DNA from: Macrostomum hystrix
Taxonomy: Eukaryota; Animalia; Platyhelminthes
NCBI GenBank assembly: GCA_950097015.1
Contig: CATNEN010000025.1
Coordinates: 4,092,001 to 4,156,000, forward strand
Direction: 5' to 3'
DNA length: 64,000 nucleotides
Made by a program: the position numbers and the translations under genes. Below, piece after piece: positions 3,244-45,676 of this stretch (position 1 is the stretch's first letter; each line of letters opens with the position of its first letter). Under the pieces are notes generated by a model that saw nothing but the letters and a program-made list of their open reading frames with translations, was not told the origin of the DNA and did no database searches.

Positions 3244-3295
3244 GGGGGTTGTAGCCTAGTGGTTAGAGCGTCGAACTCACGACTTGAAGGTCGGG
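3244..3295 (+). mobile_element. tRNA(Val-CAC)-like SINE head fragment, truncated before the B box
   Basis: A box TAGCCTAGTGG and anticodon loop CTCACGA. ACGACTTGAAGGTCGGG is shared with the SINE at 37448. No T arm or 3' acceptor stem. Confidence 0.7.
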
Positions 3296-6184: not shown

Positions 6185-9130
6185 TCTGGTAGAGTGGATG
6201 TACTATCTGAGGATCTGGTAGAGTGGATGGACTATCTGAGGATCTGGTAGAGTGGATGTACTATCTGAGGATCTGGTAGAGTGGATGGACTATCTGAGGA
6301 TCTGGTAGAGTGGCTGGACTATCTGAGGATCTGGTAGAGTGGATGGACTATCTGAGGATCTGGTAGAGTGGCTAGACTATCTGAGGATCTGGTAGAGTGG
6401 ATGGACTATCTGAGGATCTGGTAGAGTGGCTAGACTATCTGAGGATCTGGTAGAGTGGCTAGACTATCTGAGGATCTGGTAGAGTGGCTAGACTATCTGA
6501 GGATCTGGTAGAGTGGATGGACTATCTGAGGATCTGGTAGAGTGGATGGACTATCTGAGGATCTGGTAGAGTGGCTGGACTATCTGAGGATCTGGTAGAG
6601 TGGCTGGACTATCTGAGGATCTGGTAGAGTGGCTGGACTATCTGAGGATCTGGTAGAGTGGATGGACTATCTGAGGATCTGGTAGAGTGGCTGGACTATC
6701 TGAGGATCTGGTAGAGTGGCTGGACTATCTGAGGATCTGGTAGAGTGGATGGACTATCTGAGGATCTGGTAGAGTGGCTGGACTATCTGAGGATCTGGTA
6801 GAGTGGCTGGACTATCTGAGGATCTGGTTGAGTGGATGGACTATCTGAGGATCTGGTAGAGTGGATGGACTATCTGAGGATCTGGTAGAGTGGCTAGACT
6901 ATCTGAGGATCTGGTAGAGTGGCTAGACTATCTGAGGATCTGGTAGAGTGGCTAGACTATCTGAGGATCTGGTAGAGTGGCTAGACTATCTGAGGATCTG
7001 GTAGAGTGGCTGGACTATCTGAGGATCTGGTAGAGTGGATGGACTATCTGAGGATCTGGTAGAGTGGCTGGACTATCTGAGGATCTGGTAGAGTGGCTGG
7101 ACTATCTGAGGATCTGGTAGAGTGGATGTACTATCTGAGGATCTGGTAGAGTGGCTGGACTATCTGAGGATCTGGTAGAGTGGCTGGACTATCTGAGGAT
7201 CTGGTAGAGTGGCTGGACTATCTGAGGATCTGGTAGAGTGGATGGACTATCTGAGGATCTGGTAGAGTGGATGGACTATCTGAGGATCTGGTAGAGTGGA
7301 TGGACTATCTGAGGATCTGGTAGAGTGGATGGACTATCTGAGGATCTGGTAGAGTGGATGGACTATCTGAGGATCTGGTAGAGTGGATGGACTATCTGAG
7401 GATCTGGTAGAGTGGCTAGACTATCTGAGGATCAGGTAGAGTGGCTAGACTATCTGAGGATCTGGTAGAGTGGATGGACTATCTGAGGATCTGGTAGAGT
7501 GGCTGAACTATCTGAGGATCTGGTAGAGTGGATGGACTATCTGAGGATCTGGTCTTGATTATCTGAGGATCTGGTAGAGTGGCTAGACTATCTGAGGATC
7601 TGGTAGAGTGGCTAGACTATCTGAGGATCTGGTAGAGTGGCTAGACTATCTGAGGATCTGGTAGAGTGGCTAGACTATCTGAGGATCTGGTAGAGTGGAT
7701 GGACTATCTGAGGATCTGGTAGAGTGGCTGAACTATCTGAGGATCTGGTAGAGTGGATGGACTATCTGAGGATCTGGTAGAGTGGCTAGACTATCTGAGG
7801 ATCTGGTAGAGTGGATGGACTATCTGAGGATCTGGTAGAGTGGCTGAACTATCTGAGGATCTGGTAGAGTGGATGGACTATCTGAGGATCTGGTCTTGTT
7901 TATCTGAGGATCTGGTAGAGTGGCTAGACTATCTGAGGATCTGGTAGAGTGGCTAGACTATCTGAGGATCTGGTAGAGTGGCTAGACTATCTGAGGATCT
8001 GGTAGAGTGGCTAGACTATCTGAGGATCTGGTAGAGTGGCTAGACTATCTGAGGATCTGGTAGAGTGGCTAGACTATTTGAGGATCTGGTAGAGTGGCTT
8101 GACTATCTGAGGATCTGGTAGAGTGGCTAGACTATCTGAGGATCTGGTAGAGTGGCTAGACTATCTGAGGATCTGGTAGAGTGGCTTGACTATCTAAGGA
8201 TCTGGTAGAGTGGCTAGACTATCTGAGGATCTGGTAGAGTGGCTAGACTATCTGAGGATCTGGTAGAGTGGCTAGACTATCTGAGGATCTGGTAGAGTGG
8301 CTAGACTATCTGAGGATCTGGTAGAGTGGCTAGACTATCTGAGGATCTGGTAGAGTGGCTAGACTATCTGAGGATCTGGTAGAGTGGCTAGACTATTTGA
8401 GGATCTGGTAGAGTGGCTTGACTATCTGAGGATCTGGTAGAGTGGCTAGACTATCTGAGGATCTGGTAGAGTGGCTAGACTATCTGAGGATCTGGTAGAG
8501 TGGCTTGACTATCTAAGGATCTGGTAGAGTGGCTAGACTATCTGAGGATCTGGTAGAGTGGCTAGACTATCTGAGGATCTGGTAGAGTGGCTAGACTATT
8601 TGAGGATCTGGTAGAGTGGCTTGACTATCTGAGGATCTGGTAGAGTGGCTAGACTATCTGAGGATCTGGTAGAGTGGCTAGACTATCTGAGGATCTGGTA
8701 GAGTGGCTAGACTATCTGAGGATCTGGTAGAGTGGCTAGACTATCTGAGGATCTGGTAGAGTGGCTTGACTATCTGAGGATCTGGTAGAGTGGCTAGACT
8801 ATCTGAGGATCTGGTAGAGTGGCTAGACTATCTGAGGATCTGGTAGAGTGGCTTGACTATCTAAGGATCTGGTAGAGTGGCTAGACTATCTGAGGATCTG
8901 GTAGAGTGGCTTGACTATCTAAGGATCTGGTAGAGTGGCTTGACTATCTGAGGATCTGGTAGAGTGGCTTGACTATCTAAGGATCTGGTAGAGTGGCTAG
9001 ACTATCTGAGGATCTGGTAGAGTGGCTTGACTATCTAAGGATCTGGTAGAGTGGCTAGACTATCTGAGGATCTGGTAGAGTGGCTTGACTATCTAAGGAT
9101 CTGGTAGAGTGGCTTGACTATCTAAGGATC
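6185..9130. repeat. 29-bp minisatellite (TCTGGTAGAGTGGMTRGACTATCTGAGGA), ~100 units
   Basis: Period 29 (6241, 6270); highly homogeneous. Confidence 0.97.
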
Positions 9131-9163: not shown

Positions 9164-10817
9164 TTAGGCGTACAACTCCTTTTCAATTTTCTCGCCATTG
9201 GGCATTGTGAACTGCTGCTGCTGCTGCTGACTGGCAGAGGAGCCGTTAGCGGCTCGCTGGAGAAGTCGCTCGCTGGCGCTAGGCTCCCGGGGCTTCTCCC
9301 TTGGATCGTAGGCCTCCCTATTGACATTGTATTTAGTGAACTGTTCCACTTGCTCTAATGTGATGGTCATCTTAGCCAAGGCAGTTTTGTATTGCACCAA
9401 TTCGTCCACCATCTGGCAGCGCTGGCGAAGTGCCCGCATCTCGTGATCTTTGCGCTCTAGTAGTTCAGTCAGGCGACTCACCTGGGCGGAAGGATAATAA
9501 GGCTCGTAAAAATTTGTGCTCTCCGTTCGGTAAATTACTGCATATTGCACATTACTAAACATTACCCATAGGGATTCTCCCACCACCGATTGCTGGTTGG
9601 GATTCTCCCTTAAACGATTATCTGATTTGGATTCGCCCTCAAACGATTATCTGATTTGGATTCTCCCTCAAACGAGTGTCTGATTGGGATTCTCCCACCA
9701 CCGATTGTCTGATTGGGATTCTTCCAACACCGATTGTCTGATTGGGATTCTCCCTCACACTATTATCTGATTGGGATTCTCCCTCAAACTATTATCTGAT
9801 TGGGATTCTCCCTCAAACTATTATCTGATTGGGATTCTCCCTCAAACTATTATCTGATTAGGATTCTCCCTCAAACTATTATCTGATTGGGATTCTCCCT
9901 CAAACTATTATCTGATTGGGATTCTCCCTCAAACTATTATCTGATTGGGATTCTCCCTCAAACTATTATCTGATTGGGATTCTCCCTCAAACTATTATCT
10001 GATTGGGATTCTCCCTCAAACTATTATCTGATTGGGATTCTCCCTCAAACTATTATCTGATTGGGATTCTCCCTCAAACTATTATCTGATTGGGATTCTC
10101 CCTCAAACGAGTGTCCGATTGGGATTCTCCCTCAAACTATTATCTGATTGGGATTCTCCCTCAAACTATTATCTGATTGGGATTCTCCCTCAAACGAGTG
10201 TCCGATTGGGATTCTCCCTCAAACTATTATCTGATTGGGATTCTCCCTCAAACTATTATCTGATTGGGATTCTCCCTCAAACTATTATCTGATTGGGATT
10301 CTCCCTCAAACTATTATCTGATTGGGATTCTCCCTCAAACTATTATCTGATTGGGATTCTCCCTCAAACTATTATCTGATTGGGATTCTCCCTCAAACTA
10401 TTATCTGATTGGGATTCTCCCTCAAACTATTATCTGATTGGGATTCTCCCTCAAACTATTATCTGATTGGGATTCTCCCTCAAACTATTATCTGATTGGG
10501 ATTCTCCCTCAAACGATTGTCTGATTGGGATTATACCCGATTCTCGCATCAAGACATTCTATATGTGATAGTAGCCCAAACAAACGAACCTGAGCAGTGG
10601 CCTTGCCCAGCTTCTGTCCCATGGAGTCCATTTCTCGCTGATAGCGGCCGGACATATCCGTCACCATCTGGTGCGCCTCGGCGTCGCGACGTTTGGCGTC
10701 GGCTTCCAATTCGGCGCAGCGGGCTTCGAGCTCGGCAACGCGTTCCATCATAGCAGACAGGTGACGATTGGCCTCCTCAATGCTGGTCTTATTGTGCGGC
10801 CCACCCGAGGACCACAT
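9164..10817 (-). CDS. VMAC: VMAC-like coiled-coil protein, 2 exons (10817-10590, 9481-9164), 181 aa
   Basis: Phase-0 intron with donor CAG|GTTCGT at 10589 and acceptor TTCCGCCCAG at 9482 joins two ORFs in frame (..GKATAQ|VSRLTELL..). N-terminal IEEANRHLSAMMERVAELEAR resembles vertebrate [25 protein letters not shown] (recalled). Heptad pattern. Confidence 0.65.
9590..10530. repeat. 29-bp intronic minisatellite (CTGATTGGGATTCTCCCTCAAACTATTAT)
   Basis: Period 29 (9781, 9810); fills the VMAC-like intron. Confidence 0.95.
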
Positions 10818-10949: not shown

Positions 10950-11478
10950 CAACTGTCACGTGATGAGGCTGTGGCTACCAAATGATTCGCTAGTCACTGT
11001 CACGTGATGAGGCTGTGAGGCTACCAAAGATCGATGATGTCACTGTCACGTGATGAGGCTGTGGCTACCAAATGATTCGCTAGTCACTGTCACGTGATGA
11101 GGCTGTGAGGCTACCAAAGATCGATGATGTCACTGTCCCGTGATGAGGCTTTGAGGCTAACAAATGATCGATGATGTCACTGTCATGTGATGAGGCTAAG
11201 GCTAACTACCAAATGATTCGATAGTCACTGTCACGTGATAAGGCTGTGAGGCTAAAAAAAGATCGATTATTTCATTATCACGTAATGAGGCTGAGGCTAC
11301 CAAATGATCGATGATGTCACTGTCACGTGACGAGGCCGTCAGGCTAACAAAAAATTTGATTCTGTCATTGTCTCGTGAACGAGGCCGTCAGGCTAACAAA
11401 TAATTCGATTCTGTCATTGTCACGTGATGAGGCTGTCAGGCTAACAAATAATTCGATTCTGTCATTGTCACGTGATGT
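10950..11478. repeat. Degenerate ~45-49 bp tandem repeat carrying GTCACGTGA (E-box) motifs
   Basis: About 12 units of GTCAYTGTCACGTGATGAGGCTG..., about 8 with an intact CACGTG. Confidence 0.85.
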
Positions 11479-15538: not shown

Positions 15539-17608
15539 TTAATCCATAAATTTGCGATTCGGATTGGCGCCAAACAGGATGTGACGCAGCTCTGGCACCA
15601 TCTGCGAACTAATCTGCTCCAAGCGGCTTTCCAAATTGTTGCACACTTTAATCTTGCCGGCTCGGCCAATCACGTCAACGCCGCCAACGGAATCCGGGGG
15701 CAGATAATTCTGCTTGTCAATCATCAGTTTGATTGGTTTGCCAGTTTCGCGTTTGTAGCGCTCAGCGGCCGGACCCATCACGCGTTCAACAATCGGAATG
15801 TCGGCCTGACGACAACGGAGTACAGCTTCGGTCTCAAGAAGCTGGAATAGGCCCTGGGTGACTAGACCGTCCATTAGCTTGGTGTATCTGAGCGGGTTTA
15901 TTGATATTAAGAAACATGCTTAATATTATGACCGTTGATGTATGCTAATGAATGATAATGGCCCTAGTAAAGTTCTAGTAGCTGTGTTTACATTGCACAA
16001 CTCTAAATCAATATTTCGTCGATCGGGTCGACAACCAGATCCTTCAGTGTCTGACACTAATTCTCCCACCACAACCAGATCCTTCAGTGTCTGACACTAA
16101 TTCTACGACCACAACCAGATCCTTCAGTGTCTGACACTAATTCTACCACCACAACCAGATCCTTCAGTGTCTGACACTAATTCTACCACCACAACCAGAT
16201 CCTTCAGTGTCTGACATTGATTCTCCGACCACAACCAGATCCTTCAGTGTCTGACACTAATTCTACCACCACAACCAGATCCTTCAGTGTCTGACACTAA
16301 TTCTACCACCACAACCAGATCCTTCAGTGTCTGACACTAATTCTACCACCACAACCAGATCCTTCAGTGTCTGACACTAATTCTACCACCACAACCAGAT
16401 CCTTCAGTGTCTGACACTAATTCTACGACCACAACCAGATCCTTCAGTGTCTGACATTGATTCTCCGACCACAACCAGATCCTTCAGTGTCTGACACTAA
16501 TTCTACCACCACAACCAGATCCTTCAGTGTCTGACACTAATTCTACCACCACAACCAGATCCTTCAGTGTCTGACACTAATTCTACCACCACAACCAGAT
16601 CCTTCAGTGTCTGACACTAATTCTACCACCACAACCAGATCCTTCAGTGTCTGACACTAATTCTACGACCACAACCAGATCCTTCAGTGTCTGACACTAA
16701 TTCTACCACCACAACCAGATCCTTCAGTGTCTGACACTAATTCTACCACCACAACCAGATCCTTCAGTGTCTGACACTAATTCTACCACCACAACCAGAT
16801 CCTTCAGTGTCTGACACTAATTCTACCACCACAACCAGATCCTTCAGTGTCTGACACTAATTCTACCACCACAACCAGATCCTTCAGTGTCTGACACTAA
16901 TTCTACCACCACAACCAGATCCTTCAGTGTCTGACACTAATTCTACCACCACAACCAGATCCTTCAGTGTCTGACACTAATTCTACCACCACAACCAGAT
17001 CCTTCAGTGTCTGACACTAATTCTACCACCACAACCAGATCCTTCAGTGTCTGACACTAATTCTCCGACCACAACCAGATCCTTCAGTGTCTGACACTAA
17101 TTCTACCACCACAACCAGATCCTTCAGTGTCTGACACTAATTCTCCGACCACAACCAGATCCTTCAGTGTCTGACACTAATTCTCCCACCACAACCAGAT
17201 CCTTCAGTGTCTGACATTGTCGCAGTCGTTCCAACTATAATCCTTCAGATTCTGACAGTCTCCTTACTGGGCCTGATCCTTGACAATGTCCCTGAGACGC
17301 TGGGTAGTCTCAGTCAGCACATCTCGCAGATGCTGATCGCGAGCCTTCAGAACTTTCAGTCGGCCGTCATTCTTCATGTTGGAGTGCTGGATCTTCTTCT
17401 GCAATTCAATCTGCTTCTCTTTTTTGCCATAGAATTCCAGAATCTTTACTCGCTCCTGCTGCACTAAGCGAGACTTTTCAATATTGAATTCTTCCTCGGC
17501 CTTGTTATCAATCTCTTCCTTCTTCTCGTTGGCCTCCTGTTCGATAAAAGCCATCATCTGTTTAATCTGGCGCTCAACATCAGCATCGCTTAGGCCGCTT
17601 CCGGACAT
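15539..17608 (-). CDS. ATP6V1E1: V-type proton ATPase subunit E; exons 17608-17268 and 15887-15539, 229 aa
   Basis: [24 protein letters not shown]...EEEFNIEK and [10 protein letters not shown] match subunit E. A phase-2 intron (CA|GTAAGG ... CTCAG|A) restores [17 protein letters not shown]. Confidence 0.96.
16031..17217. repeat. 40-bp intronic minisatellite (CCTTCAGTGTCTGACACTAATTCTACCACCACAACCAGAT), ~30 units
   Basis: Exact period 40; fills the V-ATPase E intron. Confidence 0.97.
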
Positions 17609-22741: not shown

Positions 22742-24178
22742 TTAAAGCTCTGACTTCTCGTCATCAACAAAAAGGAGTCCCTTAGCATGAAAGGCATTCG
22801 CTGCTCGAACGAACGCACGCACTTCTAAGTCCATCAGATCGGGCAACTCAAGAGCAGCAAAGTGACCGCCACGATCGAAGTCGGCGAAGTGCAGCAGATT
22901 CGGATTTGTGACGCGAACGAAGCGCTCCGGCACTCGCGAGAGCTCGTACGCGAGGCTGGTGACGCCATACGGTACCTTTGATGGCATAGACTGGTAGGCA
23001 GATGTGGCCTCCATATCATTGCCAAATGACTCCTTGTAAAGACGCATGGATGATGTAATGCAGCCAGTGGTCCAATAGATCATAACATTTGTTAGCAGCT
23101 CGTCCAGAGTGAAGGCAGCCTTGGGACCAATCAAATTACCGTTCGACACGAACCTATTTTCCGGCAATGTCCACACGCTGAACTTCTCAACAATGTAGGC
23201 CGCCAGACCCACTGGCGAGTCAGACAGGGCGTGTCCTACTGAGTCAGGTCGCGTAGAGTGCAGATGCATGTGGCCTGATTCGCGGATGGTGTTGCCCAGC
23301 TTCTCCAGAAAGGGGAAGAGCTTGTCGCTGTCAAGCTTGTTAAAAAGGATACAAACTGGCAGGAACGATCCCAAGATCGTCTGCAACACGATTGACGGCT
23401 GCCGGACTGGCTGAGCGGGCATGTTTGTATGGAAGCCGAGCACTTGCTCTGGAAACACTCTCGGCATCACATGTCCGATAACACTGCCGAAATCACCAGC
23501 TTGGATATAGTACTTCTGGAAGCCCAACCGGAGCATGAGCTTATTGAACACTCGAGCACAGGCTGCAGCATTGAAGCCGCGTCTCTTCGGAGCTTCAGAC
23601 CACGCATATCCTGGAATCGATGGAGCGACGACCTCGAACGCCATTCCGTCCTCATCAGGAGTGGTCAGCAGAGGCAGCAGCTTATAAAACTCGAACACTG
23701 ATCCTGGCCAACCATGTAGAATCAGCAGCGGTACAACCTTCTTTGCATTACGAGACGGCTTCACATGCATGAAGTGCACTCTCAGTCCTTCGATCTTGGT
23801 GAAAAAATTCGGAAAGTTGTTCTGTCGATCTTCCCAAAGTCGCCAGTCATATTGCTTGAGCCAGTGAGACACCAGCTGCTTCATGAAGTCACCATTGAAG
23901 CCGTACTCGAAGCCGGAGTCCTGGATTGGCTCGACATACTTGAATGCTCGCAAGCGTGACTTCAGATCTTCAAGAGTTGCATTGCTGACGGTCAGCCGTG
24001 CGGCTTCTACGGCTTCGCTATCGCTGCTCGCTGCAGCATCGGTTGAGGCGCCCCAGTTGACGGTATCAGGCAGGGCTGGCTTCTCCGGAGCTGCGAGATT
24101 GTCCAGGCAGCCGAGACCAGCCAGCAGCACGAGTGTGACACTGCCGAGACAGACCAGAGGCAGCAGCGTGCGGCACAT
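22742..24178 (-). CDS. EPHX1: Microsomal epoxide hydrolase (EPHX1/JHEH family), variant paralog, intronless, 478 aa
   Basis: N-terminal anchor, HGWPGS, nucleophile motif QAGDFGS, SMRLYKE, acid Glu (AYEL) and GGHFAALE His. Confidence 0.93.
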   Translation of the reverse strand: MCRTLLPLVCLGSVTLVLLAGLGCLDNLAAPEKPALPDTVNWGASTDAAASSDSEAVEAARLTVSNATLEDLKSRLRAFKYVEPIQDSGFEYGFNGDFMKQLVSHWLKQYDWRLWEDRQNNFPNFFTKIEGLRVHFMHVKPSRNAKKVVPLLILHGWPGSVFEFYKLLPLLTTPDEDGMAFEVVAPSIPGYAWSEAPKRRGFNAAACARVFNKLMLRLGFQKYYIQAGDFGSVIGHVMPRVFPEQVLGFHTNMPAQPVRQPSIVLQTILGSFLPVCILFNKLDSDKLFPFLEKLGNTIRESGHMHLHSTRPDSVGHALSDSPVGLAAYIVEKFSVWTLPENRFVSNGNLIGPKAAFTLDELLTNVMIYWTTGCITSSMRLYKESFGNDMEATSAYQSMPSKVPYGVTSLAYELSRVPERFVRVTNPNLLHFADFDRGGHFAALELPDLMDLEVRAFVRAANAFHAKGLLFVDDEKSEL

Positions 24179-25541
24179 GCTTGCTTTTTCTTTCGTAAGC
24201 TACTTTACGCTTGTTGAGGATAATCTTGTTGAATTGCTAAACACGCATTTTGATTTGTAAAAGGTTATAACAAATGCTTTAGTTGCTGTTCCTGCACTTG
24301 CTATGGCGCAGTGGTGTTCAGGGGTGATTTTTATAGTTGCTTAAAAACGCATTGAGTCTAAGGACTCTAAGTTTTCGTAGCGTGTCCCGGTTTTCATGTG
24401 GTTTATTGTGCCTTGTTCAGTCAGCGAAAACACGATTGTACATTCTTTTTTATTTCCATTCATTCGAACATTACACAATGTACACTAAAAATGAGTCATT
24501 CGATAGCAGTGTGGGGGAGCCTTGTTAACCGCAGCCCATAATTATCACAACCTGCATGAATTGACCAATTGAATTGGTTGGATGTGTGCACCCGCTAGCT
24601 AATTGGCGAATTATTTCAGTCCATATTTCTAGACTATCTAGGAATTTCTTAGAGGAAAATTTCCAGACTGTGTTCCAGTGGCTCCACTATTGGCGTGCAA
24701 GGAGGTGCTGGGTCGGATACGTCAAAGGGAAATTGTACTCTTTTCGGCATTTATAATGATTTAGCAACAATTTTGTAAGCTCTGTGCTTTTACAGATTTG
24801 ACAAGTGCTATAATTTATAGTAGTCTTTGATCCATAGGCATTAAATATATTTAAAGAAAATAATTGATTGGGAACAACGTATTTGAAATGGACAAGTTGT
24901 TTTCAATGTCAAGTTTTAGATTGAAATGCAAATTCCCAGTTCAAATTCCTCAACCTGGCACGATAGCCAATAGCCAATAACACCTTGACTTATTGTGCGA
25001 TATTCCTCTCGTGGACTCCCGCCAAGTAGTCAGTGTGGGTCCATGCATCTGTCTAGTCGTATACTCGTAGTTTTACCCGTCAAGTTCACAGCCCTGGTGC
25101 CACTGGTTTTTTAAAGGCCCAGTCTAAGTGACTAAAAAACTCAAAAGGTTTTCTGGAAACTCCGAAAACCAGACGTGTAAATTTTATTGGCTACCATTAT
25201 TTTTCCTTTTTCCTTTCGATATGCAATGCTACCATTTATCTTCAAACCTGTACATTCATTTCAGAAAGAGTATGCGGCCAGGAAAACTGTCAAAGAGTAC
25301 ACTCACTTGCACAGCCACTGAAACACCTTGCTAAACGAAAAAGCTAGTGTACATATCAGGATAAAGGCACAAGCGAAGAGATAAAAGTTTAACAACGCTA
25401 ATTAAAGTTGAGAGGAAAAATAAAAGACAGTTTGTGGGTAGAAAAACAAGAAACAAGTAAGTTTGCCAGACGGAGTTTGTTATCAAGCTCTTAGGTCGCA
25501 AAATTCTCAAGGAATCGGACAGCTTTGGCTCAGTAACAAGC

Positions 25542-26981
25542 ATGTGCCGCACGCTGCTGCCTCTGGTCTGTCTCGGCAGTGTCACACTCGTGCTGCTGGC
25601 TGGTCTCGGCTGCCTGGACAATCTCGCAGCTCCGGAGAAGCCAGCCCTGCCTGACACCGTCAACTGGGGCGCCTCAACCGATGCTGCAGCGAGCAGCGAT
25701 AGCGAAGCCGTAGAAGCCGCACGGCTGACCGTCAGCAATGCAACTCTTGAAGATCTGAAGTCACGCTTGCGAGCATTCAAGTATGTCGAGCCAATCCAGG
25801 ACTCCGGCTTCGAGTACGGCTTCAATGGTGACTTCATGAAGCAGCTGGTGTCTCACTGGCTCAAGCAATATGACTGGCGACTTTGGGAAGATCGACAGAA
25901 CAACTTTCCGAATTTTTTCACCAAGATCGAAGGACTGAGAGTGCACTTCATGCATGTGAAGCCGTCTCGTAATGCAAAGAAGGTTGTGCCGCTGCTGATT
26001 CTGCATGGTTGGCCAGGATCAGTGTTCGAGTTTTATAAGCTGCTGCCTCTGCTGACCACTCCTGATGAGGACGGAATGGCGTTCGAGGTCGTCGCTCCAT
26101 CGATTCCAGGATATGCGTGGTCTGAAGCTCCGAAGAGACGCGGCTTCAATGCTGCAGCCTGTGCTCGAGTGTTCAATAAGCTCATGCTCCGGTTGGGCTT
26201 CCAGAAGTACTATATCCAAGGCGGCGACTGGGGGAGTGTAATAGGTCACGTAATCACCCGAGAATTCGGAGATCATGTTCTTGGTTTTCATACGAATATG
26301 CCCATTCAGTCGGTTCGACAACCGTCGATAATTATTCAGACGGTTTTGGGATCATTTCTCCCAGACGGTATTTTGTTCAGCAAGAGGGACGGCGATAAAA
26401 TTTTCCCATACTTTCAAAAGTTGGCTGAAATGGTTCGAGAGACAGGCTACATGCACATTCAAGGCACGCGACCGGACACTATTGGCCACGCACTGTCTGA
26501 TTCGCCAGTTGGTCTGGCGGCCTATGTTCTAGAGAAATTCAGCGTTTGGACTGACCCAAGCAATCGATTTTCAGCATCGGGAAACTTGATCGGTCCAAAG
26601 GCTGCCTTTACATTGGACGAGCTGCTTACCAACGTCATGATCTACTGGACTACTGGCTGCATTACTTCATCCATGAGGTTTTACAAGGAGGTGTTCAGCA
26701 ACAGCATGGACTCCTCCGTGGCTTATTTATCAATGCCATCGGACGTGCCTCACGGTGTGGCAAACTTTGCGCACGAGCTCGCCAGTGTGCCGGAGCGATT
26801 CGTTCGCATCGTCAATCCGAACCTGTTGCACTTTTCTGACTTTGACCGCGGCGGCCACTTTGCAGCCCTGGAGCTGCCTGGCGTGATGAACGTGGAGGTG
26901 CGCGCGTTCGTTTCAAAAGCGGAGGCTTATCATGCCAATAATAAGGAAATGCTGCCTGAGAGGAAAGGCAGCGAGCTCTGA
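25542..26981 (+). CDS. EPHX1: Microsomal epoxide hydrolase (EPHX1/JHEH family), canonical paralog, intronless, 479 aa
   Basis: HGWPGS, QGGDWGS, ETGYMHIQ, SMRFYKE, AHEL and GGHFAALE: complete triad plus both tyrosines. Confidence 0.95.
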   Translation: MCRTLLPLVCLGSVTLVLLAGLGCLDNLAAPEKPALPDTVNWGASTDAAASSDSEAVEAARLTVSNATLEDLKSRLRAFKYVEPIQDSGFEYGFNGDFMKQLVSHWLKQYDWRLWEDRQNNFPNFFTKIEGLRVHFMHVKPSRNAKKVVPLLILHGWPGSVFEFYKLLPLLTTPDEDGMAFEVVAPSIPGYAWSEAPKRRGFNAAACARVFNKLMLRLGFQKYYIQGGDWGSVIGHVITREFGDHVLGFHTNMPIQSVRQPSIIIQTVLGSFLPDGILFSKRDGDKIFPYFQKLAEMVRETGYMHIQGTRPDTIGHALSDSPVGLAAYVLEKFSVWTDPSNRFSASGNLIGPKAAFTLDELLTNVMIYWTTGCITSSMRFYKEVFSNSMDSSVAYLSMPSDVPHGVANFAHELASVPERFVRIVNPNLLHFSDFDRGGHFAALELPGVMNVEVRAFVSKAEAYHANNKEMLPERKGSEL

Positions 26982-27975: not shown

Positions 27976-28927
27976 GCTAAATAATTCTTTCCTCAGGTCA
28001 TTAGCTTTGCATTATTCAAAATTCTTCAAAGTTAGCGACAAAAAGTGCCTCGAACTCCATATGAATTACAGCAATAAAACTATCCTCTGATAAATAATAT
28101 CACGTTAACTGACCACATGAAATACTATACTATATAATACTTTCGTTTCGGAGAAATATAGGAACACTATAGTTCCTAAAAATGCTTCATTTTTTGTAAG
28201 TGAGCCTTTGTAATTCGTATTCATTGTGTTTACGAAACAAAGAAAAGTAGACTTTGAAAATTAAAAACTTAATTTTTTTAATTTTTTATGAAAGAGATCT
28301 ACCAAAAGCAAACCACGACATTCAGAATATCTTAGAGAACTATTAGTTACTTTACTAGTGTACACTACTTGCTTTAACCGTGAAACTAAGCGAGTCGCTC
28401 TTTAGTATGGCTTCACAAACCTATTTAATAATTTCTAGTGAGAAAATCTTAAAGCTTGAAGAAAACGTTCGAAAAAACAAAGCATATTGAAACAAAACAA
28501 GTGCAAAAACGAACTATCTATCTTAATAAAGGATTGCATAAAATCTTGTTAAATCTTCGCTAGTGTTTTGATGGGATCTCAGAATGTCGCAAACCAACTT
28601 GAACGCTTTGCTATTTGGCTTTTACTGAAATGTTCAACTAATAAAAATGAAACTACTGGAGGCGAGCTACGAGCTAAATACGCAATTCCTCCTTAACTGA
28701 AAAATAGAGTGGTTTGAAACATTAAAAGGAGTCTGCTATATACGCATGTTCTCGTGTTTTCTAGCAACCTTTTAGATAGAAAACACAATGGCAGGAAAAT
28801 TCACAATTTATAGAAATAGTTTATAGAAAACGACGTTTTGGATAAAATGAAACAAAAACTCAACCACATTAAACTTGTCATACATGAAGACCCTATAAAA
28901 TTTGATCAAAATCGCGATCTTTGGGAG

Positions 28928-31900
28928 TTACAGAATTCCCGTCGGTCTTAAAGACGGCCGAGGGCCCTTAGCCTCTACCAAGAGGGTCCTGAGTACGTCT
29001 AGCAGCTCTTCTCTGCTCATGCGGGCTATGGTGCAGGCCCCGTCGCATTGGTGGTTCGAGTCGCGACCGACATCCTCGCCTGTAATTTGGCCAAGTCGAG
29101 CTCGATCGTTGCGCAGCCCGATGGCCTGGTTAATGAGGTGGTGCACCACGACGTCCGGGTCGAACAGGTCCATCTTCACTCGCACCGGGCTGTTCGGCAG
29201 CCATCGTCCCAGGCTAGCAACTAAAAGTTCGCGCAACACGTCCAGAATGTTCAGCGGCGGCGACAGGGCTGAGTAGTTTTCGTACTCGTTGACGAATGAG
29301 AATCGCTCGAATTGCCAAAGGGCTCTGCTGTTGCTGTCGATTTCATCGATTGTCTTGGAGAACAGAGCGACAATGAGGCTCAGTAGCAGAATGGTAGTGA
29401 TGATGATATAAATTGGTAACAAGATGTAAGGCACGACGAATACAGCGTCAGGGTGGGGACACTCTTCACTGCTGTTTTGGCGAGCCTCGAACACTTGGGC
29501 ACATTTTTCTCCAGTCATGTGATCTAGGTGGTATTCGCCGAACATGCTGTAGAAACTGATGTGTAGCACATTTTTCACAACTTCGGTCATGGAGAGCTGA
29601 GTCGGATTGTAGGCATAGAAGCCATTTGGTAGCATTAGTGCAGTCATTAGGATGCCAAAGCCTGAGAGATAGATAAACAGGATGTAGAGGAAAGGCAACA
29701 GATCCTTGATAATCATAGTGGACATCATTGTTAGCTTGGGGCCAAAGTAGGCATTCACCCGGGCGATATTGAGTAGCTTCACCCACAACAGAAGGCAGGC
29801 CAGACCGTAGAAAAACCGGGCGCAGAACCAGACATGGTTGTCGAACAGTTCGTTGAAGGCCGCTGTGGACTCCTCCTGAAGGGCCATAGTTAGTCGCAGA
29901 ATGAAGGCAGTGATCATAAAGAGGCATGCAAATCCGTCCACAATGTTCCACTTGTTAGAGCCATACTCGTGAAAACTGTCATGCCACAATGACAGACCGA
30001 GTTCTCTTAGCTCTTCGATGACAAAACCGAAAGCGATAATATAAGCGCAAATCTCTAGCGGCGAGATAGTCCAGTTGAAGTCTAACAGAACAGTGTAGGA
30101 CATTATGAGAATCAGAGTCATGTGGCTCATTGTGAAGTAGCGAAACTTCACGCAAGGAATATGGTAGAAACAGTACAGCAGGCCAATGAAGGTCAGAAGC
30201 TTCGCCTTTACAGACTTCCTGGAGCCATAGCTTCGCTCTCCACCGAATTCGTTGTCAAACATCGCTGTCGCCGGACCAATGTCATCCCGCAGAGCGAAGC
30301 TCTCGTTACTTCCACTGCTACCCTGATTTGTTGTGTCGTTAGTCTTCTGCTTCTGCTGTTTTTGCTTCTCAACACGAGAAGTTGCTCGACCCCCATCGTA
30401 GGCGTAAAGGAGAATTGCCAGGAGGGGATTCATCGGAACGATGCCCATGACGACCGCGAATTCTCGAAGCCAAGGGTTCATCTTGCAGAGAAAGCGTTGC
30501 CAAGTGATGTCCATCGCCTTCTGGCAGACGTCCAGCCGCAGGAAGGAGTCGCACTCACTGTTTGCAGCTAAGTGGATGCAACTCAAATTTCCAAACGCAG
30601 GCATGCTTTGAAGCAGGTATTGGTAAGTTACCCACTTGTCCTCGCTCATGTCTACTTGGACAGCCTTAGTTAAAGCATCACAGGCTATGCGCTCGCATTG
30701 ATCAGCAAGATCAGTGACAGTCGGCAGGTGCAGGGCATCACTGTCAAGAATGGCTTCCAGTTTCCGAAGAATCCCAGCGCACAACACGCTAAGTGGAACG
30801 ATTTCTAGCTGGGTCTTTCTCAGGAAGGCGAGAGTTAGGTTGAGCCTGCCAGTCAGAATGCTCCACACGGCGAGAGTTTCGATTGGATTAGTGATTTTTA
30901 GAGCATCCTTACCAGATTCTCGACCGTCGTCACCACCATTGGCAGCCGTTGGGCTCATACCAATGGATTTGGCGACACGCTGGTTCACCTTACGGAGATT
31001 AAATGACTGGCGCTTGCCTCCGATTGTACCAGCACCGGATTCCATAAAACAGCTGCAGAACTGTTTGCTGATGATACTTGCGTCCCTGTTCGTATTACTG
31101 TACAGGGTGGATATATGGTCCTCTATGAACACACTAACCTTTTCCCAAAGAACACCGCATTTCATCACGTCGTTCAGCGCTCCAATATCTTCGCGAAACA
31201 GAATGTACTTTGTAGTGAAAATGGCGATAGTGTCGATGATTTCTCGATTATCTGAGAAACCATGAATGGCGCTGGTCTTCAGGGCGGCCATCATTTTCGT
31301 CTGGAACTCCATCACATCTTGCAGGTTTTCTTCGTCTATATCCAGCAGTTCTTCGACCAGTTTCAGCTCCTTCGCATGATCCCCAACGGAGTTATAGTAG
31401 CAACGACGGGTCTCCGAGTCAATCAGGGGCAACAACGTAAGGAACTCTTGAAAGCCCCGGCTCCTGTACAACTCCTGCGGCTTGGTAACCTTGGCGTCGG
31501 TCAGCACTCGATCAGTGAAGTGTAAAATCAACTCGCGAAGTGTACCGCGATTCTTACTGCTCATCATTACGTCTATAGCCGTCCGACCGTCAGTGGTCTC
31601 TAGATCGACAGTGGCGCCTCGATCAAGGAGTAGTTTCATCAGCGGGATGTTCTGGTTGGCTACCGCAATGTGCAATGGCGTCCTGCCGTCAGAATCTTGT
31701 GCATTTACCAGATCGGGCGCTGTGTTGAGCATCAGAAAGGCGTGCTCCAGTAGGTCATTGATGCAGGCTCGATGTAGCGGCGTCAGCTGGGCCTGGTCAA
31801 CTAGCTTAGCATCTGCGCCGTGGCTCAGCAGCAGCTCCAGAAGCTCTGTAGAACTGTCAGCGCAAGCTTTGTGCAGAGGATAGTCACCAATAGACATCGC

Positions 31901-32413
31901 GATATTCGGATCAGCGCCATGCTCGAGCAAGAAGGTGACGGTGCCAACCACATCGGGTCCTGACAGAGCGTAGTGAAGCGGCACATTTCCAGCCGAATTG
32001 GGCTCATTGATTTTAGCACCGAATTTAAGAGCGATCTCCAACATATTTATCTTGCTCAGTGCGGCAGTCACATCGCTGAGACGCATAGCCTCATGGATTT
32101 CCGAGTCAACGACGTCGGGAGTAACAAAGCGTTGCAAAGCTCCCATATCCTCATCCATTATGGCTTGATAAATAATTTCGGCTATGTTGGGCTCCTCCTG
32201 CACCAGCACGGGGGCTATCACGGTATCGGAGTCCACCGTCTTCTCCACCGGTTGCTCAGTGTCGGGCACAGGCGTGTCCTCCGGTGCTTGTGGCGCGATT
32301 GACTCGCGACGCTTGGTCGTCAGTCGTGTGCCGAAAAGTCGAAGGTTGCCAAAGTCAAGCTTCTTGCTTTTCTTCTTGGAGCCGAAGAAGCCTTTGGTTT
32401 GAGAGTCTTGCAT
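28928..32413 (-). CDS. TRPM: TRP channel with N-terminal ankyrin repeats and a TRPM-type MHR4/6TM/TRP-box core, single ORF, 1161 aa
   Basis: 4 canonical plus ~2 degenerate ankyrin repeats (PLHYA, PLHKA, TPLHRA, GRTPLHIA). TRPM-like motifs: AVWSILTGR, SCIHLA..CQKAMDITW, FYHIPCVKF, KWNIVD, FGPKLTMM, pore SMFGE, LLLSLIVALF and TRP box WQFERF. Confidence 0.9.
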   Translation of the reverse strand: MQDSQTKGFFGSKKKSKKLDFGNLRLFGTRLTTKRRESIAPQAPEDTPVPDTEQPVEKTVDSDTVIAPVLVQEEPNIAEIIYQAIMDEDMGALQRFVTPDVVDSEIHEAMRLSDVTAALSKINMLEIALKFGAKINEPNSAGNVPLHYALSGPDVVGTVTFLLEHGADPNIAMSIGDYPLHKACADSSTELLELLLSHGADAKLVDQAQLTPLHRACINDLLEHAFLMLNTAPDLVNAQDSDGRTPLHIAVANQNIPLMKLLLDRGATVDLETTDGRTAIDVMMSSKNRGTLRELILHFTDRVLTDAKVTKPQELYRSRGFQEFLTLLPLIDSETRRCYYNSVGDHAKELKLVEELLDIDEENLQDVMEFQTKMMAALKTSAIHGFSDNREIIDTIAIFTTKYILFREDIGALNDVMKCGVLWEKVSVFIEDHISTLYSNTNRDASIISKQFCSCFMESGAGTIGGKRQSFNLRKVNQRVAKSIGMSPTAANGGDDGRESGKDALKITNPIETLAVWSILTGRLNLTLAFLRKTQLEIVPLSVLCAGILRKLEAILDSDALHLPTVTDLADQCERIACDALTKAVQVDMSEDKWVTYQYLLQSMPAFGNLSCIHLAANSECDSFLRLDVCQKAMDITWQRFLCKMNPWLREFAVVMGIVPMNPLLAILLYAYDGGRATSRVEKQKQQKQKTNDTTNQGSSGSNESFALRDDIGPATAMFDNEFGGERSYGSRKSVKAKLLTFIGLLYCFYHIPCVKFRYFTMSHMTLILIMSYTVLLDFNWTISPLEICAYIIAFGFVIEELRELGLSLWHDSFHEYGSNKWNIVDGFACLFMITAFILRLTMALQEESTAAFNELFDNHVWFCARFFYGLACLLLWVKLLNIARVNAYFGPKLTMMSTMIIKDLLPFLYILFIYLSGFGILMTALMLPNGFYAYNPTQLSMTEVVKNVLHISFYSMFGEYHLDHMTGEKCAQVFEARQNSSEECPHPDAVFVVPYILLPIYIIITTILLLSLIVALFSKTIDEIDSNSRALWQFERFSFVNEYENYSALSPPLNILDVLRELLVASLGRWLPNSPVRVKMDLFDPDVVVHHLINQAIGLRNDRARLGQITGEDVGRDSNHQCDGACTIARMSREELLDVLRTLLVEAKGPRPSLRPTGIL

Positions 32414-34360
32414 CGTGGACTTCTGGCGGCCAGACAGCAGGTTGGATTCTGTGCAGCTGGCAGGTGTCTAGATGGTAAAGTATTTAGCAACGTATTGTGA
32501 GTCTGTACTGAGGCAATCAATTGTCAGCAGGCTCCGAAAAGTTATAAAATATGTTCGTTGAAAAAATCAGCCATGCTTTATTTGAGATATAAAGCAATCT
32601 TATCGATGTTTTAACAGCCAAAAAGCAGTTTCAGACTTAGGCACGCTGCGCATACGCCTCGATCCAATCTCTCTCAGCTTTGTCACCAAGCATGTTTACA
32701 ATTGAGCAAAAGCTTTGATAAAATTTGCATGCCTAATCATTGCGTGGCACTAGCACTAGCCAATTTTATCTTATCATAACAGACGACCTTAATTATGGTC
32801 TCAACACTCGATTTGCGCCTTAGCGAAAGCAGTTAGGCAGGTAATTTTGCGCTTGAAAAGAATATTCTCAGCGAAATGCATACAAATGAAATATTAATTA
32901 TCGGCAAGCAACTTACCGAATTTCTTAGTCTCGTGCAATTCTCTGTTGATTAAAGCATTCAATAACAGCTTTTTAGTAAGAGTTCAGAGTGATAATGAGA
33001 ATTTCCAATGCCAAGAACATACCTTATAATGTGCTATTTTATGGTCTCTAATAAGTCTACTTTATGCATGCTTTTGTATGTCTAATTTTTAAGCACCCAA
33101 CGCGTAAATGAATATTATTGGCTAGCGAATGTACATTCAAATAGCAATTCAACATTTGCACTAAAACAAGCGTCAACAGGTACATGTACCACTCTGTATG
33201 CAGTTTAGTTAGTCCATCGTTCAATGCCGTTCGATTGATCAAACAGACTGCACCATTTAAAAATGTACTATTAGTAGTTAGATATTACCTTTTGGTATTT
33301 GTTTCACTGGTACATCCAATGTCTTAACAGTGGTGTATCACACACTGTGGTGTATTTTACAACAGGTTGTGAAATTCGTTTGTTAAATTTGGAGTAAGTG
33401 GTATTTAGGGAATGTGAAGTGTTAAGCTTGCGAATTTTGGTAAATGTAAAATGTTTGGGGTTAGGAAAGTGCCCTGTACCAACACACCATAATTTAATTT
33501 TTGCACGAATCGAAGAAAATTTGTTTTAATCGTTAGAATATATTAGTTTAATACGCTTTCAATTGAAAATTTAAGCAAGGCACCATCCAGAAAGACGGCG
33601 TGTAAGCTTTGGTCCTTGCATAATGTTTACTTCTTAATTAGTCCTTAAAAATCAGAGCTAAGACATCACTACCTAGACACGAATGAGAAACCCGTTCTTG
33701 ATTACTTGGTAACCGCAGCGTAGGCAGAAATGAACCACTGCTTGTTTGATTCTTAAAAAATCAATCGATAAAAAGTAATCTGTTAAATTCATTCGTGCAC
33801 TATAACTTGCCAGACTTTGCTGTAATAATTTTTGAATTAATTGACAGAGTTCAGGGCGAAAGAAGACAGACTGCAGATTGGTCTCATATTTTCCTACAGG
33901 CTCTTAGAAAAGCCACCTCGGTCCAATTTGTCCTTCCCCCGATCTCAGACTGTCCGGGCTGGCCGAGGTTCCGGGCTCGGAGTATAGCCCAGCCACAGGC
34001 TGGAATATTAATCAAAAACTTGGCCAGCTCCGGCCAAAAGTTCGTCTGTAATTATACCATCGCAATAATCAGCCTCTTGAGTCCGCCCTGCAGCCTTCTC
34101 TCTCTTCTTCTCTCTATCCTATCTGCCTTCTACATCCCTTCAGCCATTGCTGGCCTCCGAATTGAATTCAATTTCAAAGCTATAGGAAGAGGAGAGCGCG
34201 GAGTAGCGAGGGCCGAGCAGCTAACGGAATTGGAAAAGCCGATAGTTCCTTCTAAAATATGCTGCGGCAACCAAGGCTGCAACTCCACTCGCCTGCCAAA
34301 AACGAGGGCGCTTCGAGGGGCTTGGGTCCGCGGCTATTCTTAGAAAAGACAGTCCTGCAT

Positions 34361-43390: not shown

Positions 43391-45676
43391 CTGCTAATTC
43401 ACCTGGTTCTCACGGACTGCTCATTCACCTGGTTCTCACGGACTGCTCATTCACCTGGTTCTCACGGACTGCTAATTCACCTGGTTCTCACGGACTGCTC
43501 ATTCACCCTGGTTCTCACGGACTGCTCATTCACCCTGGTTCTCACGGACTGCTCATTCACCCTGGTTCTCACGGACTGCTCATTCACCCTGGTTCTCACG
43601 GACTGCTAATTCACCCTGGTTCTCACGGACTGCTAATTCACCCTGGTTCTCACGGACTGCTCATTCATCCTGGTTCTCACGGACTGCTCATTCACCCTGG
43701 TTCTCACGGACTGCTCATTCATCCTGGTTCTCACGGACTGCTCATTCATCCTGGTTCTCACGGACTGCTCATTCACCCTGGTTCTCACGGACTGCTCATT
43801 CACCCTGGTTCTCACGGACTGCTAATTCATCCTGGTTCTCACGGACTGCTCATTCACCCTGGTTCTCACGGACTGCTCATGCACCTTGGTTCTCACGGAC
43901 TGCTCATTCACCCTGGTTCTCACGGACTGCTCATTCACCCTGGTTCTCACGGACTGCTAATTCACCCTGGTTCTCACGGACTGCCAATTCACCCTGGTTC
44001 TCACGGACTGCTAATTCACCCTGGTTCTCACGGACTGCTAATTCATCCTGGTTCTCACGGACTGCTGATTCAACCTGGTTCTCACGGACTGCTCATTCAC
44101 CCTGGTTCTCACGGACTGCTCATTCACCCTGGTTCTCACGGACTGCTAATTCACCCATGTTCTCACGGACTGCTAATTCACCCTGGTTCTCACGGCCACT
44201 GCTAATATTCAACCTGGTTCTCACGGACTGCTCATTCATCCTGGTTCTCACGGACTGCTCATTCACCCTGGTTCTCACGGACTGCTGATTCAACCTGGTT
44301 CTCACGGACTGCTAATTCAACCTGATTCTCACGGACTGCTAATTCACCCTGGTTCTCACGGACTGCTAATTCATCCTGGTTCTCACGGACTGCTGATTCA
44401 ACCTGGTTCTCACGGACTGCTCATTCACCCTGGTTCTCACGGACTGCTCATTCATCCTGGTTCTCACGGACTGCTAATTCACCCTGGTTCTCACGGACTG
44501 CTCATTCACCCTGGTTCTCACGGACTGCTCATTCACCCTGGTTCTCACGGACTGCTAATTCACCCTGGTTCTCACGGACTGCCAATTCACCCTGGTTCTC
44601 ACGGACTGCTAATTCACTCTGATTCTCACGGACTGCTAATTCACCCATGTTGTCACGGACTGCTAATTCACCCTGGTTCTCACGGCCACTACTAATATTC
44701 AACCTGGTTCTCACGGACTGCTCATTCATCCTGGTTCTCACGGACTGCTCATTCACCCTGGTTCTCACAGACTGCTCATTCACCCTGGTTCTCACGGACT
44801 GCTCATTCATCCTGGTTCTCACGGACTGCTAATTCACCCTGGTTCTCACGGACTGCTAATATTCAACCTGGTTCTCACGGACTGCTCATTCATCCTGGTT
44901 CTCACGGACTGCTAATTCACCGTGGTTCTCACGGACTGCTAATATTCAACCTGGTTCTCACGGACTGCTAATTCACCCTGGTTCTCACGGACTGCTCATT
45001 CATCCTGGTTCTCACGGACTTCTCATTCATCCTGGTTCTCATGGACTGCTCATTCAACCTGGTTCTCATGGACTGCTAATTCACCCTGGTTCTCACGGAC
45101 TGCTCATTCATCCTGGTTCTCACGGACTGCTCATTCATCCTGGTTCTCACGGACTGCTCATTCACCCTGGTTCTCACGGACTGCTAATATTCAACCTGGT
45201 TCTCACGGACTGCTAATTCATCCTGGTTCTCACGGACTGCTCATTCATCCTGGTTCTCACGGACTTCTCATTCATCCTGGTTCTCATGGACTGCTCATTC
45301 ACCCTGGTTCTCACGGACTGCTCATTCATCCTGGTTCTCACGGACTGCTAATTCGACCTGGTTCTCACGGACTGCTCATTCACCCTGGTTCTCACGGACT
45401 GCTCATTCACCCTGGTTCTCACGGACTGCTCATTCACCCTGGTTCTCACGGACTGCTAATTCACCCTGGTTCTCACGGACTGCTCATTCACCCTGGTTCT
45501 CACGGACTGCTCATTCACCCTGGTTCTCACGGACTGCTCATTCACCCTGGTTCTCACGGACTGCTCATTCACCCTGGTTCTCACGGACTGCTCATTCACC
45601 CTGGTTCTCACGGACTGCTAATTCACCCTGGTTCTCACGGACTGCTCATTCACCCTGGTTCTCACGGACTGCTAAT
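43391..45676. repeat. 27-bp minisatellite (CACGGACTGCTCATTCACCCTGGTTCT), ~85 units
   Basis: Period 27 (43501, 43528); explains the HPGSHGLLI and LVLTDCSFT ORFs. Confidence 0.97.

Follow-up and report, generated by a model that had tools for sequence, protein, structure and literature searches.

The window analysed here is a stretch of 64,000 nucleotides from the free-living flatworm Macrostomum hystrix (assembly GCA_950097015.1, contig CATNEN010000025.1, positions 4,092,001 to 4,156,000 of the forward strand). On its minus strand a single uninterrupted open reading frame (ORF) of 1161 codons plus stop extends over positions 28928–32413 and encodes a protein in which ankyrin repeats precede the body of a TRPM channel. 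The 3486-nt ORF was recovered as an earlier sequence-only reading had described it (28928–32413, minus strand, 1161 amino acids, aa), and the motifs quoted there are all present in the translation at about the positions given: AVWSILTGR at aa 514–522, SCIHLA...CQKAMDITW at aa 611–638, FYHIPCVKF at aa 749–757, FGE at aa 958–960 and WQFERF at aa 1033–1038. The frame is intact and complete, and a single exon spans the whole channel gene, not just the ankyrin/TRPM junction. The closest database protein, P0001 of M. lignano, is 85% identical (82% over the full-length alignment); its gene is likewise intronless, one unbroken ORF (L001 4001–7405), and syntenic with the window gene.

For the encoded protein the following domain order is shown: a disordered N-terminus, six to seven ankyrin repeats, an MHR3-like region, MHR4, pre-S1, the transmembrane segments S1–S6, the TRP helix and a short helical tail. 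All parts are read from the minus strand. The first 76 aa (32186–32413) are basic, of low complexity and predicted to be disordered, with a predicted local distance difference test score (pLDDT) of about 30; with 66% identity to M. lignano they are the least conserved part of the protein. The ankyrin domain (aa 77–300; 31514–32185) consists of a cap pair and six 33-aa repeats and is seen with Pfam, with phmmer against the PDB and in the structure model at a pLDDT of about 88. It is followed by a helical linker (aa 301–505; 30899–31513) that has no Pfam match and is structurally MHR3-like, its aa 344–520 superposing on TRPM chains. MHR4, the TRPM2-like domain (aa 506–690; 30344–30898), is identified by the Pfam model PF25508 and by the phmmer alignment with nvTRPM2 and is modelled at a pLDDT of about 85. 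A disordered linker rich in Q, K and S (aa 691–734; 30212–30343), with a pLDDT below 50 at aa 688–732 and variable within the family, lies before pre-S1. Pre-S1 and the voltage-sensor-like S1–S4 (aa 735–886; 29756–30211) comprise helices at aa 735–750, 753–776, 785–811, 821–844 and 860–886, and the S4–S5 linker, S5, pore helix, filter, pore loop and S6 (aa 887–1018; 29360–29755) comprise helices at aa 891–900, 905–927, 942–956 and 990–1018. The TRP helix (aa 1022–1045; 29279–29350), which carries the TRP box WQFERF and E1043-Y1044, is a helix in the AlphaFold2 model and aligns with nvTRPM2. The C-terminal tail (aa 1046–1161 plus stop; 28928–29278) is about 115 aa long, contains three helices and has no enzyme domain; its last helix is long (aa 1114–1148 in the AlphaFold2 model) and may form a coiled coil.

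In order to judge the gene model we considered contigs of three public runs, all from a single study (X2–X4; assemblies of about 40 Mb). The contigs extend over 28282–32485 (X2), 28426–32447 (X3), and 28426–30535 and 30683–32485 (X4). They are colinear with the channel gene, without joints and without loose ends or unmatched extensions, and depth is zero at 32600–33500. Such gene-limited coverage is the pattern of transcriptome assemblies, and the channel gene therefore appears to be transcribed as an unspliced mRNA, which would be about 4.2 kb long (28282–32485, minus strand), with a 5' untranslated region of about 72 nt and a 3' untranslated region of about 650 nt. No upstream exon of the channel gene was found in the contigs of the three runs, and the upstream DNA is AT-rich and cannot be aligned with M. 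lignano. When the whole window was searched by tblastn with three SLOG regions for a possible SLOG exon, nothing below E 0.28 resulted. Short separate contigs of the same runs at 28000–28211, just downstream of the 3' end of the channel gene, suggest a further transcribed unit at this position.

A neighbouring gene pair is also shared with M. lignano. An inverted pair of epoxide-hydrolase genes (EHN + Abhydrolase_1) adjoins the channel gene at 22742–26981, and such a pair also adjoins the M. lignano orthologue (L001 8384–9814 on the minus and 11022–11405 on the plus strand), so that the arrangement of channel and hydrolase pair is conserved between the two genomes. The two channel genes share only 76% nucleotide identity, and as the upstream DNA is not alignable either, the window would stem from another Macrostomum lineage than M. 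lignano or be an old homeologue. Their nonsynonymous divergence (dN) is 0.11 and their synonymous divergence (dS) about 2.2, which is saturated, resulting in a dN/dS of about 0.05. By part, dN/dS amounts to 0.063 in the ankyrin domain, 0.026 in MHR4, 0.024 in the transmembrane and TRP region and 0.16 in the N-terminus. The window gene is under strong purifying selection.

These data bear on the question of whether the gene is a copy in decay or without function, for instance a retrocopy, given that the genome is rich in repeats and highly duplicated. A single exon, as compared to three in Schistosoma mansoni TRPM_MCLZ (see below), would suit a retrocopy, and many minisatellite arrays surround the gene, which belongs to a family highly multiplied in M. 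lignano. Against decay stand the intact frame of 1161 codons, the intact and syntenic orthologue, the saturated dS of about 2.2 next to a dN of 0.11, the low dN/dS with its lowest values in the transmembrane region and MHR4, and the mRNA-consistent contigs in three runs. We consider this explanation very unlikely and, on the same evidence of frame, dN/dS, orthologue and contigs, rejected both the pseudogene or retrocopy and the assembly-artefact readings. The gene model appears sound; the sequence-only reading had held an artefact to be unlikely, and the colinear contigs, the intronless syntenic orthologue and the low dN/dS bear this out. As to the start of the gene, we noticed that the annotated M. 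lignano orthologue begins with MSSPPESQDKGFFGSKKK... (L001 4001) and the window gene with MQDSQTKGFFGSKKK... (32413), which are unlike, and that the two N-termini align only from a GFFGSKKK motif onward. The first codons, or the true start, are thus non-conserved or uncertain between the two.

Next, the assignment of the domains was assessed. Five Pfam ankyrin models match at about aa 120–290 with E values from 2.6e-22 to 5.2e-16 (Ank_2 2.6e-22, Ank_4 9.6e-21, Ank 9e-20), and phmmer against the PDB matches the ankyrin part to Ankyrin-1 and to designed ankyrins, with E values between 1e-54 and 1e-62. An AlphaFold2 model of the whole protein, built on a 33-sequence family alignment (mean pLDDT 73, pTM 0.66), places ankyrin helix pairs at a 33-aa period, starting at aa 112, 145, 179, 212, 246 and 279, with a cap pair at aa 77–96; the repeat count is six to seven. 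The same model shows S1–S6, the pore helix and the TRP helix. PF25508 (TRPM2-like) matches at aa 498–625 with E 6.6e-8 over profile positions 134–255 of 257, and in paralogues the match extends further N-terminally (e.g. profile 63–255 in P0009). No LSDAT/SLOG, Nudix or kinase domain was matched by Pfam in the window protein (threshold for LSDAT E<=1), and a SLOG profile built with jackhmmer, which labels 94 other TRPMs, does not pick up the window protein or any ankyrin-only protein. The union of ankyrin repeats with TRPM-type segments, as read from the sequence before, is hence seen in the Pfam ankyrins, in PF25508 and in the modelled helix pairs, and the short tail of about 115 aa without NUDT9H or kinase agrees with the absence of enzyme-domain matches in Pfam.

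Since ankyrins, a helical linker, six transmembrane helices and a TRP box are also the body plan of TRPC channels, the protein might really be of TRPC, TRPN or TRPA type with a transmembrane region that is merely TRPM-like. We searched the PDB with the channel half only, using phmmer with aa 291–1101 and leaving the ankyrins out. All of the best 60 distinct sequence matches were TRPM chains, and no TRPC, TRPN or TRPA chain was among them. The top match was nvTRPM2 (E 1.4e-36; aa 509–1058 against chain residues 578–1125), followed by TRPM3 (E about 1e-34) and TRPM7 (E about 1e-28), with TRPM1/8/5/4/2 lower. TRPA1 and NOMPC match the window protein solely through the ankyrin repeats, at aa 124–290. 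With Foldseek on the whole model, 49 of the 50 top places were taken by TRPMs, with NOMPC at rank 3, which could be taken in favour of an ankyrin-bearing TRP family.

The region between ankyrins and channel was compared by fold. Aa 290–700 were modelled separately (pLDDT 76) and aligned by VIA-align with about 48,000 PDB representatives. TRPMs filled the first 12 places, with Z scores of 11.2–13.8 and 220–270 aligned residues. Aa 344–650 superpose on nvTRPM2 412–707, hTRPM2 429–802 and hTRPM4 395–709, corresponding to MHR3 and MHR4, and within this stretch aa 344–520 superpose on TRPM chains from about residue 395–430 on, at Z 12.5–13.8. Among the lower matches were TRPY1 (Z 9.7) and TRPC1/4/5, whose Z of 6.0–7.6 could be taken in favour of a TRPC-type linker and yet is about half that of the TRPMs over MHR3 and MHR4. 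Sequence and fold together show MHR4 in the window protein; for MHR3 the modelled fold gives support. It is further supported that the ankyrins occupy the usual place of MHR1/2 and that the rest of the TRPM body is kept, as had been proposed from the sequence: no SLOG is found in protein or window, and aa 344–650 fold like MHR3 and MHR4.

Accordingly the protein has MHR3/MHR4 before pre-S1, six transmembrane helices, pore and TRP box recognizable by sequence, and a position among TRPMs in the trees described below; the classical N-terminal MHR1/2 (SLOG / LSDAT_euk) was not found in it. Nor does it resemble by its domains TRPS (soromelastatin, ced-11-like), a family marked by SLOG, ancestrally also Nudix, and a divergent TRP domain: it lacks both SLOG and Nudix, and its TRP box WQFERF is canonical and TRPM-like. 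With canonical TRPMs (nvTRPM2, TRPM3, TRPM7, TRPM4/5/8) it shares the MHR3/MHR4 fold, pre-S1, S1–S6, a filter of FGE/FGQ type, two pore-loop cysteines, a W-x-F-x-R-[FY] TRP box and the Ca2+-site motif. It differs from them in having ankyrins in the place of MHR1/2 (SLOG/LSDAT) and in carrying neither NUDT9H nor kinase domain. TRPC shares the order of ankyrins, helical linker domain, six transmembrane helices, TRP box and short tail, but has no detectable sequence affinity to the channel half, and its linker fold scores lower (Z 6.0–7.6 as compared to 11.2–13.8 for TRPMs). PF25508, which is specific to TRPM, matches the window protein, and the clade to which the protein belongs nests inside SLOG-bearing flatworm TRPMs (100/100) in a tree of TRPMs rooted on a clade with a choanoflagellate TRPM. 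In view of the sequence matches, PF25508, the Z scores and the tree, which all favour TRPM, we rejected the TRPC-like reading and give the whole group of TRPC, TRPN and TRPA readings only a very slight chance. The channel half is of TRPM type, as the earlier reading had it: its best 60 PDB matches are TRPMs, and in the tree the gene lies nested within TRPMs that carry SLOG.

We then searched for relatives. A word-indexed protein search with the channel half returned four M. lignano proteins only; relatives from parasites were seen by exhaustive HMMER with aa 291–1161 against 1.84 billion cluster representatives, which gave 1191 matches at E<=1e-3. Domains were labelled and source names collected for the best 150 of these and their cluster members. 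Most of the best 150 carry SLOG. Three flatworm TRPM architectures were distinguished among the labelled relatives: (a) ankyrins, MHR4 and channel without SLOG, (b) ankyrins together with SLOG, and (c) ordinary SLOG TRPMs. Architecture (a), that of the window protein, occurs in ten M. lignano clusters (P0001–P0006, P0008, P0009, P0163/P0007 and P0195/P0038), in the trematodes Dicrocoelium (P0017), Opisthorchis (P0011), Fasciola, Paragonimus, Calicophoron, Schistosoma, Trichobilharzia and Heterobilharzia, and in the cestodes Schistocephalus, Sparganum, Taenia, Echinococcus, Mesocestoides, Anoplocephala and Hymenolepis. The flatworm-only distribution of ankyrin-only TRPMs holds for the named sequences among the best 150 of 1191 matches. 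Architecture (b), ankyrins with LSDAT_euk, full PF25508 and channel, was found in M. lignano (P0020, P0188), Clonorchis/Opisthorchis (P0021) and S. mekongi (P0194). The ordinary SLOG TRPMs include a clade with a 2242-aa protein of Schistosoma spindale, probably of the TRPM_PZQ type. Three UniRef models of M. lignano (P0161, P0162 and P0169, 2489–3003 aa) are fused to integrase or other ORFs; they are probably gene-model fusions of an older annotation, and the shorter NCBI models are preferable.

Phylogenies were calculated from the region homologous to aa 500–1080: a quick tree of 112 rows with SH-aLRT values, and a careful tree (IQ-TREE, LG+C20 PMSF, 74 rows x 557 columns, UFBoot/SH-aLRT). 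The careful tree was rooted on the clade with the Salpingoeca (choanoflagellate) TRPM and is free of TRPS, TRPC and TRPN outgroups, so that it gives placement among TRPMs only. All ankyrin-only proteins form one clade in both (quick 100; careful 100/100, branch 1.08). Within it lies a Macrostomum subclade that includes the window gene (99; 100/99); here the gene groups with P0001 (100; 100/100), and these two with P0002 (100; 100/100). Sister to the Macrostomum subclade are the remaining ankyrin-only proteins, i.e. two further pairs plus the parasite orthologues (96; 100/96), and the neodermatan TRPM_MCLZ orthologues are themselves united (99; 100/100). An all-flatworm TRPM superclade is not resolved in the quick tree (59) and receives 100/100 in the careful one. 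There the superclade, composed of ankyrin-only, ankyrin-plus-SLOG and SLOG proteins, is nested among metazoan SLOG TRPMs. The grouping of ankyrin-plus-SLOG with SLOG-only flatworm TRPMs, as sister to the ankyrin-only clade, is likewise not resolved in the quick tree and has 96/91 in the careful tree, and the ankyrin-plus-SLOG proteins, from four genera, form one clade (100/99). These proteins share N-terminal ankyrins and the flatworm superclade (100/100) with the window protein, and differ from it in the LSDAT_euk domain that they keep (E 1e-21 to 1e-22), in a full PF25508 and in grouping with the SLOG-bearing flatworm TRPMs.

The architecture has a published precedent. Smp_333650, the meclonazepam-activated channel TRPM_MCLZ of S. 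mansoni, carries multiple repeats described as 'ankyrin-like' in its long N-terminal domain and, when cloned and expressed in HEK293 cells, gave raised cytoplasmic Ca2+ and single-channel currents (PMC10788528, J Biol Chem 2023/24). It 'lacks the NH2-terminal MHR1/2 or SLOG domain' and carries ankyrin-repeat-like modules instead (PMC11731825 section 3.1, Front Parasitol 2024), and its C-terminus is short and without enzyme domain (PMC11731825). A catalogue of 63 orthologues in trematodes, monogeneans and cestodes has since been published, in which the name 'TRPM-like' was proposed on account of the N-terminal ankyrins (PMC12861061, 2026). Among our relatives, P0201 (S. guineensis cluster, 1380 aa) has H827, H831, Y864, E868, R943, H946, Y1038 and Y1117 at the exact published S. 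mansoni numbering and is therefore TRPM_MCLZ. At the S4 site the Asian-schistosome sequence reads Y, in line with the publication.

The sequence-only reading had called the architecture possibly undescribed, unless it proved to be catalogued already. This part does not stand, as the architecture is explicit for TRPM_MCLZ in all three publications (PMC11731825, PMC10788528, PMC12861061). It had looked new because papers on general TRPM evolution treat the family as free of ankyrins (PMC7306681, for TRPM and TRPS) or leave out flatworms (PMC13143021). A new and uncatalogued chimeric TRP family, arising by recent fusion in this lineage, could draw on that same statement on TRPM and TRPS in PMC7306681, on a 2026 MBE survey that mentions neither flatworms nor ankyrin-TRPMs (PMC13143021), and on Macrostomum members not being found in the literature searched. 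Set against the description of TRPM_MCLZ (section 3.1 of PMC11731825; PMC10788528; PMC12861061) and the single clade that joins the window protein with it (100/100), such a family is highly improbable. In addition the architecture is common to Macrostomorpha, Trematoda and Cestoda, which makes it old and not the product of a recent fusion. The architecture of the window channel is thus already described and not of a new kind. What is new is modest: a free-living member of the subfamily, a large expansion in macrostomids, where M. lignano has 10 or more paralogue groups, and the fact that the free-living copies have kept a pore, TRP box and Ca2+-site motif of canonical TRPM form. The finding shows that the subfamily is older than neodermatan parasitism, and the flatworm clade is an exception to the survey statement that TRPMs lack ankyrins.

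When comparing the window protein with TRPM_MCLZ directly, we found that both have N-terminal ankyrins without SLOG, an MHR4-type region, six transmembrane helices, a TRP helix and a short enzyme-free C-terminus. They also share H764 (H831 in S. mansoni), E801 (E868), Y955 (Y1038) and Y1044 (Y1117) and the acidic/amide motif of S2 and S3. Within the meclonazepam pocket the window protein has F760 for H827, F797 for Y864, K879 for R943 and N882 for H946, so that four of the eight published pocket and pore positions are identical. The ankyrin array, with six to seven repeats, covers about 220 aa in the window protein as compared to about 300 aa in the parasites, and one exon stands against three in S. 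mansoni. Pores read FGE or VGE and TRP boxes WQFER[FH] in the Macrostomum proteins; in the parasite channels they read F-EVS and WLAGRY. Since the window protein lies in a Macrostomum-only sister radiation, the gene is a lineage-specific co-orthologue of TRPM_MCLZ and not its 1:1 orthologue.

Based on aligned residues, some functional properties can be predicted. In S2 the window protein has an E801-x-x-E804 motif and in S3 an N823-x-x-D826 motif; in the phmmer alignment E801, E804, N823, D826 and E1043 lie opposite nvTRPM2 E893, Q896, N918, D921 and E1110. WQFERF...E1043 aligns with WKFQRY...E1110 and 'SMFGEYHLD' of the pore with 'QMYGELFLD' of nvTRPM2. Throughout the family E800, E801, W822 and N823 do not vary, and W1033 and E1043 hardly do. 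The aligned E/Q/N/D/E positions are those which we take to coordinate activating Ca2+ in the structures of nvTRPM2 and TRPM4/5/8. As all five are kept or conservatively changed, cytosolic Ca2+ is likely to be a co-agonist, with a Ca2+-dependent gating step, and gating would proceed through the S1–S4 cavity as in other TRPMs. The filter F958-G959-E960 is also that of TRPM1/3/6/7 and nvTRPM2, from which permeability to divalent ions is predicted. Two cysteines of the pore loop, C970 and C985, presumably sit at the position of the TRPM pore-loop disulfide. With SLOG lost, ADP-ribose or nucleotide sensing via MHR1/2 would be lost as well, and the ankyrin array is an obvious candidate for a protein-interaction or inter-subunit surface. 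A response of the window channel to meclonazepam is unlikely: its S4 determinant is N882 and not H, and the identity of only four of the eight pocket and pore positions leads us to predict insensitivity. This mismatch predicts drug insensitivity, not exclusion from the TRPM_MCLZ clade.

Taken together, the window protein has the features of the TRPM_MCLZ-like group, i.e. ankyrins without MHR1/2-SLOG, a short enzyme-free C-terminus and common descent with the Smp_333650 orthologues. With a probability of about 0.87 the window gene belongs to a flatworm-specific branch of ankyrin-bearing, SLOG-less TRPMs ('TRPM-like'), whose parasite member is TRPM_MCLZ. Several points weigh against this. Full-length identity to TRPM_MCLZ is about 22%, the pore reads FGE as opposed to F-EVS ('SIF-EVS') and the TRP box WQFERF as opposed to WLAGRY, so that any functional transfer from the parasite channel is loose; the channel-function data of the subfamily come from the S. 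mansoni channel (PMC10788528). Confidence in the structure models is moderate (mean pLDDT 73 for the whole protein and 76 for aa 290–700), and a Z of about 13.8 is borderline for all-helical domains, where according to the tool's own note unrelated helical repeats can reach about 13. Pfam Ion_trans is not reported for the window protein at E<=1, though it is for paralogues; as these paralogues match and both phmmer and structure show S1–S6, we did not read the miss as absence of a channel. The Ca2+-site reading leans on residue roles in published TRPM structures, with E (E804) instead of Q at one position. Finally, the run type of X2–X4 is unrecorded, transcription is read from the coverage pattern, and the contigs are silent on strand and true ends.

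How the branch came about can be outlined tentatively. We consider it possible, at somewhat less than even odds, that ankyrin-only TRPMs arose once in a flatworm ancestor, possibly via an ankyrin-plus-SLOG intermediate, and radiated into at least 10 groups in free-living macrostomids; the parasites would have kept essentially one copy, TRPM_MCLZ, and the Macrostomum copies the ancestral pore (FGE), TRP box and Ca2+ site as a diversified set of sensory receptors. The ankyrin-plus-SLOG form could be an intermediate toward the SLOG-less form; as evidence for this the ankyrin arrays are too generic. Between ankyrin-plus-SLOG and ankyrin-only TRPMs they show weak similarity (E 3e-6 to 1e-8), as compared to E 1e-62 to generic designed ankyrins, and are too weakly alike to decide on a common ankyrin origin of the two. 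For the same reason we do not claim a route in which ankyrins were added first and SLOG was then deleted. In schistosomes two TRPMs have been validated as drug targets, TRPM_MCLZ among them. If a single origin and a macrostomid radiation hold true, Macrostomum would be a tractable free-living model for the natural activator of TRPM_MCLZ and for the role of the ankyrin ring. The age of the subfamily, its expansion in Macrostomum, a genus amenable to laboratory work, and the canonical TRPM features of the free-living copies together give a comparative handle on the exchange of SLOG for ankyrins and on the role of the parasite channel.

Apart from the channel gene and its neighbors we noticed that minisatellite arrays with periods of 14–46 bp are abundant in the window. 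They are located at 1–572, 936–1423, 1808–2404, 3293–5480, 6184–9130, 9571–10532, 10952–11477, 16031–17216, 43391–45673, 54048–54596 and 55462–64000, and they account for blocks of extreme GC skew in the composition profile. The largest array, of about 8.5 kb, is built from 513 copies of a 17-bp unit and runs past the end of the window.

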